Source: Camelus dromedarius (Eukaryota). From it: DNA of 64,000 nt. The position numbers and the translations under genes are program-made. The stretch covers positions 4,588,001 to 4,652,000 of the forward strand of contig NC_087460.1 of assembly GCF_036321535.1 (NCBI RefSeq). The letters run 5' to 3'. Positions 25,079-44,984 of the stretch are shown here, piece by piece; the first letter of the stretch is position 1, and every line of letters starts with the position of its first letter. The notes beneath the pieces are model-generated. The model was not told where the DNA came from. It saw only the letters and a program-made list of their open reading frames with translations, and did no database searches.

Positions 25079-44984
<19,906 letters not shown>

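Follow-up and report, generated by a model that had tools for sequence, protein, structure and literature searches.

The mammalian sodium channel ENaC sets the final reabsorption of sodium in kidney, colon and airway. It is a heterotrimer with constitutive activity, whereas ASIC1 is a proton-gated homotrimer. In the outer pore, each ENaC subunit contributes one residue to a ring that was mutated by Schild et al. in 1997 as rat α S580, β G522 and γ G534 (PMC2217053). Asp or Glu placed at these positions produced a block by external Ca2+, with Ki values of 2.1, 0.4 and 2.2 mM for the α, β and γ subunits, respectively, at a site about 15% into the electric field, and the authors took this to mean that the ring is exposed to the lumen of the pore. 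The published mutants remained functional, with modest effects: α S580D carried an essentially normal macroscopic current with an amiloride Ki of 0.14 µM, and β G522S moved the amiloride Ki up to 0.6 µM with normal conductance (PMC2217053), while mouse α S580C was functional, with a PLi/PNa of 2.17 (compared with 1.82 in the wild type) and a PK/PNa of 0.06, that is, a trace of K+ permeability (PMC8536179).

Two further sites help to place this ring. Snyder et al. (2000) identified human α S549 as the degenerin position, situated in the outer vestibule (PMC2231819), and Li et al. (2011) equated α S583 with ASIC1 G439, the pore of chicken ASIC1 being narrowest at G432–G436 (PMC3047608). It follows from the latter correspondence that α S580 matches ASIC1 G436, at the lower end of the constriction. 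This homologous Gly is present in all three ASIC1 subunits (PMC3047608); a role of the ENaC ring as a gate is putative.

We describe here a natural substitution at the α position of this ring, found in a window of 64,000 nucleotides of the dromedary genome (Camelus dromedarius; RefSeq assembly GCF_036321535.1, contig NC_087460.1, forward-strand positions 4,588,001 to 4,652,000). All coordinates below are those of the window.

Dromedary SCNN1A and its pore codon

When the RefSeq protein of C. dromedarius is aligned with the window, SCNN1A, the gene for α-ENaC, resolves into 12 coding exons on the minus strand, which span 25079–44771 from residue 72 onward. In coding order, the first six lie at 44771–44629, 35899–35632, 34758–34568, 30588–30485, 30102–29939 and 29517–29419, and the last six at 29203–29086, 26606–26528, 26403–26346, 26198–26143, 25980–25905 and 25465–25079. 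All 11 introns have GT–AG boundaries, the exons are 100% identical to the RefSeq protein from residue 72 to the stop, and the SCNN1A genes of alpaca, whale, banteng and rhino likewise have 12 coding exons. A masked run of N at 44774–44929 hides the 5′ part of the first coding exon; judging by the RefSeq protein, it also covers the region encoding the His–Gly gating motif. Purifying selection acts on the gene, which is intact, spliced and transcribed.

The last coding exon (25465–25079, stop included), preceded by an AG acceptor at 25467–25466, encodes the pre-M2 region, TM2 and the cytoplasmic C-terminus. At the residues of the C-terminal tail that set dromedary apart from Bactrian and wild camels, the window has the dromedary form. 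In HMMER searches, its closest match among solved structures is human α-ENaC (PDB 6WTH chain A, E=4e-53), compared with 1e-9 for human β, 1e-6 for δ and 6e-4 for γ, and every full-length match is named as an α subunit. The ASC domain (PF00858) has been found, in precomputed annotation, in proteins identical to the window exons from residue 72 (P0168 and P0062), and the characteristic features of ENaC/degenerin channels – the G/S-x-S filter in TM2 with the degenerin site before it (LLS(N)...WFGSS) – can be read directly. On the conserved gene neighbourhood (TNFRSF1A on one side, LTBR on the other), the signs are indirect: an old Camelus ferus gene model joins α-ENaC with the TNFR domain PF00020, and primate TNFRSF1A proteins share clusters with α-ENaC models. 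By the subunit comparison, the gene in the window is the SCNN1A orthologue, not that of the β, γ or δ subunit; the ring residue was not used in this assignment, which stands regardless of the unusual residue described next.

The last exon begins ATG GTC ACC CTC CTG TCC AAC CTG GGC GGC CAG TGG AGC CTG TGG TTT GGC TCC TCC, and the second of its two adjacent Gly codons (GGC, 25436–25438) encodes Gly533 in the numbering of the 651-residue dromedary isoform, equivalent to human Ser553 and rat Ser580. The original prediction had located a Ser-to-Gly change in just this codon, and re-reading the minus strand returned exactly the same coordinates. A single base, the coding-strand G at 25438, distinguishes the codon from AGC. 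In the HMMER alignment with 6WTH chain A, Gly533 lies opposite human α Ser553; at the same position, human β and γ have Gly (LLSNLGGQF and LLSNFGGQL, respectively) and human δ has Ser. The dromedary α subunit thus carries the β/γ state, the usual α state being Ser or, in sauropsids, Asn. That β, γ and ASIC-type channels have Gly here, as the original prediction had stated, is borne out by the structure alignment and by the published ASIC1 comparison (PMC3047608).

The resemblance to β and γ is a local one, consisting of the Gly itself and the motif LGGQ at the pore-facing ring. Immediately downstream, the camelid protein reads QWSLWFGSS, typical of α, rather than QFGFWMGGS as in β or QLGLWMSCS as in γ. 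The functional sites on both sides of the ring are those of human α-ENaC (P37088; 6WTH chain A), which has Ser at 553: the degenerin-site Ser (TCC, 25448–25450; human S549), the amiloride-site Ser (AGC, 25427–25429; rat S583, human S556) and the GSS selectivity filter (GGC TCC TCC, 25409–25417, counted from the exon start at 25465) are all unchanged on the minus strand. The substituted residue had been proposed to sit about one helical turn from both the degenerin and the amiloride sites, and the published positions agree, since it comes four residues after the degenerin-site Ser (PMC2231819) and three before the amiloride-site Ser (PMC2217053).

The ring residue in camelids and other tetrapods

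As the change amounts to a single-base transition, the G at 25438 might be thought to be a sequencing or assembly error, or else a private polymorphism, and the original prediction had indeed carried this caveat. Protein clusters, however, show the Gly in proteins from two dromedary assemblies as well as in those of C. ferus, C. bactrianus and the alpaca (Vicugna pacos). Within the 90%-identity cluster that includes the dromedary protein, the camelid members – the proteins of both dromedary assemblies, several isoforms from C. ferus and C. bactrianus, and the alpaca protein – read LLSNLGGQW, and the non-camelid ones, pig and four baleen whales, read LLSNLGSQW. The same division is seen in DNA: the codon is GGC in alpaca genomic DNA and in an mRNA contig of Bactrian/ferus type but AGC in blue whale, banteng and black rhinoceros, and across the 60 bases surrounding the codon the camelids are otherwise identical to each other.

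Transcripts and public sequencing runs point the same way. The Gly-containing protein is encoded exactly by two independent RNA-seq assemblies, and in a word-index search 20 public runs, belonging to 10 studies, matched all sampled words of 25330–25465, with a chance of about 0.06 that no sampled word spans base 25438. These runs include at least four coded organism labels and RNA libraries, and a 2.4-kb query gave a fifth organism label. Taken together, at least five independent assemblies from four species have this codon, as do two RNA-seq assemblies and the 20 runs. These data sets span differing species and studies and do not go back to a single sample, and we reject an artefact or rare allele as extremely improbable. 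To judge from these sequences, the Gly is fixed across Camelidae, here meaning dromedary, Bactrian and wild camel and, through one assembly, the alpaca, with low-frequency Ser alleles formally possible inside camelid populations. The convergence on the β/γ/ASIC residue, which had been put forward on condition of fixation, therefore applies to all camelids examined.

A separate irregularity concerns the neighbouring degenerin site. A 2012 gene model of C. ferus (EPY87851; P0108), in which α-ENaC is fused to a TNFR domain (PF00020), reads LLPNLGG, with Pro in place of the degenerin-site Ser (codon 25448–25450), but newer models of C. ferus and C. bactrianus, like the window, have LLSNLGG; the Pro is probably an assembly or model error.

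Among 116 representatives of tetrapod α-ENaC clusters that contain the motif, the ring residue is Ser in 87 (mammals, amphibians and some lizards), Asn in 25 (birds, turtles, crocodilians and most squamates), Arg in two (both from the tree shrew Tupaia chinensis) and Gly in two (both from Camelus). Cluster representatives may mask variation – the camel cluster itself holds both Gly and Ser – and ten large mammalian clusters were therefore opened member by member. All 126 further mammalian sequences with the motif, drawn from primates, murid and sciurid rodents, bovids, cervids, hippopotamus, carnivores, bats, marsupials and toothed whales, have Ser. The expectation that mammalian α subunits carry Ser here thus holds in about 190 non-camelid mammalian sequences, with the Arg of the tree shrew as the sole exception, and the sequences compared have Gly in dromedary, Bactrian camel, wild camel and alpaca, and Ser in the other mammals apart from the tree shrew.

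Among all sequences examined, Gly at the α ring position is confined to Camelidae. Given AGC in whale, banteng and rhino and GGC in camelids, the most parsimonious history has one A>G transition in the ancestral camelid lineage, prior to the divergence of the camel and alpaca lineages. The camelid loss of ring asymmetry dates back tens of millions of years.

The α ring residue has also varied elsewhere among tetrapods. Sauropsids are divided, with Asn in birds, turtles, crocodilians and most squamates and Ser in Anolis and Podarcis, a pattern which implies that the residue changed more than once in tetrapods.

Selection on camelid SCNN1A

Substitutions were counted by strict parsimony on a codon alignment of six taxa, with blue whale, banteng and rhino as outgroups. 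On the camelid stem, 16 changes are nonsynonymous and 17 are synonymous (omega roughly 0.28), compared with 53 and 81, respectively, on the pooled whale, banteng and rhino branches. At the resolution of six-taxon parsimony, the protein did not change disproportionately along the camelid stem (Fisher p=0.43), and accelerated protein evolution on this branch was accordingly rejected as a candidate explanation. GC-biased gene conversion as a driver fared no better, since stem-camelid changes are balanced between weak-to-strong (16) and strong-to-weak (18). That the Gly codon has persisted although it lies in a CpG context (GGC|GGC) was likewise considered as a sign of selection and discarded as uninformative, because a neutral codon would, by a rough estimate, have about an even chance of not reverting over the short crown-camelid tree.

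Compared with 71 other mammalian sequences, α-ENaC has seven substitutions unique to camelids, five of which (N306H, L323V, G369D, L565I and S533G) fall at sites that are 97–100% conserved in other mammals; for the first four of these, conservation is 99–100% in 69–71 other mammalian sequences. Three are in the extracellular domain, N306H at 30486–30488, L323V at 30053–30055 and G369D at 29494–29496, all on the minus strand. L565I (codon ATC, 25340–25342, minus strand) lies at the inner end of TM2, where 69 of 70 other mammalian sequences have Leu, so that the TM2 exon holds two camelid-only substitutions, this one and S533G. On the codon-level counts, SCNN1A evolves under ordinary purifying selection, with the pore change among a small number of lineage-specific changes.

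The glycine ring and its likely effect

With Gly in the α subunit joining those of β and γ, the camelid ring is expected to be all-Gly, like that of ASIC1. The substitution would strip the three-residue ring of its only side chain; this ring faces the outer pore, between the degenerin gating site and the amiloride and selectivity-filter region, and the resulting all-Gly ring may make the outer pore slightly wider or more flexible. At most, gating, Na+ self-inhibition or the access of blockers or divalent cations would be modestly shifted. Selectivity for Na+ should stay the same, because the substitution leaves the GSS filter and the Ser residues of the amiloride and degenerin sites untouched.

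We favour, with a probability of roughly 0.6, the reading that the camelid Gly is a genuine, fixed natural pore variant that is tolerated and nearly neutral or fine-tuning, a small effect being likelier than a major adaptation. The laboratory mutants α S580D, α S580C and β G522S concern the same pore-facing ring position and show that substitution is tolerated there; together with the Asn of sauropsids, these mild mutants indicate that the position accepts change with modest consequences. None of them, however, is Ser-to-Gly in α, whereas the camelid change is natural and fixed, and the predicted small effect is to this extent an extrapolation from other substitutions. Two observations pull in the opposite direction. 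Amphibians and about 190 other mammalian sequences have retained the Ser, and so wide a retention argues that its hydroxyl is not irrelevant in mammals; furthermore, the reverse change in the β subunit, G522S, moved amiloride affinity sixfold.

A functional reading would hold that Ser-to-Gly, acting alone or in concert with L565I and the changes in the extracellular domain, has a measurable influence on ENaC and was kept by selection as an aid to salt and water economy, candidate effects being on open probability, on Na+ self-inhibition or on block by divalent or other urinary cations. In its favour are the position of the residue, which lines the pore near the gate, the presence of Ser in all other mammals sampled except the tree shrew, the four additional camelid-unique changes at near-invariant sites (N306H, L323V, G369D and L565I), and the expression of ENaC in the camel kidney, where it has been studied under dehydration (PMC8222267). 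Yet dehydration left ENaC mRNA in that organ unchanged (PMC8222267), the known ring mutants are mild and the camelid stem has no nonsynonymous excess. The original prediction had linked the substitution to the extreme salt and water handling of camels, a link that is weakened by the alpaca: as it shares the Gly, the change must be older than the desert specialisation of Camelus. We therefore consider selection for an altered pore unlikely; a tolerated change of small effect is the likelier reading on present evidence.

It is also conceivable that Gly is tolerated, or even required, only in combination with other camelid substitutions, whether in α itself (for example, L565I) or in the β or γ subunits. 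The three subunits jointly form the ring, and S533G and L565I are encoded in the same TM2 exon, but nothing in the data puts their co-occurrence above chance, and we rate such compensation as rather improbable.

In the literature searched, we found no prior description of the substitution, the camel papers being expression studies only; the camelid Gly would thus be a natural pore variant that lies in public, annotated sequences and is apparently undescribed. The outer pore of ENaC is usually asymmetric, with Ser in α and Gly in β and γ, and camelids offer a natural experiment in which this asymmetry is missing. They make it possible to ask whether the hydroxyl of the α Ser plays a part in gating, self-inhibition or blocker access, and whether part of camelid salt handling is written in the channel pore rather than in its regulation. 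Were Gly to behave like the wild type, a pore-lining position would be marked as tolerant, which would be useful for the interpretation of human SCNN1A variants; were it instead to have been selected, it would represent a lineage-wide natural pore variant of a mammalian sodium channel.

Outside camelids, the tree shrew provides a minor observation of its own. Two α-ENaC models of Tupaia chinensis (P0076 and P0107) read LLSNLGRQW, with Arg at the ring position; both derive from one contig, and the Arg is either genuine or a mistake in the data. One would expect a positively charged residue in the outer pore to have consequences.
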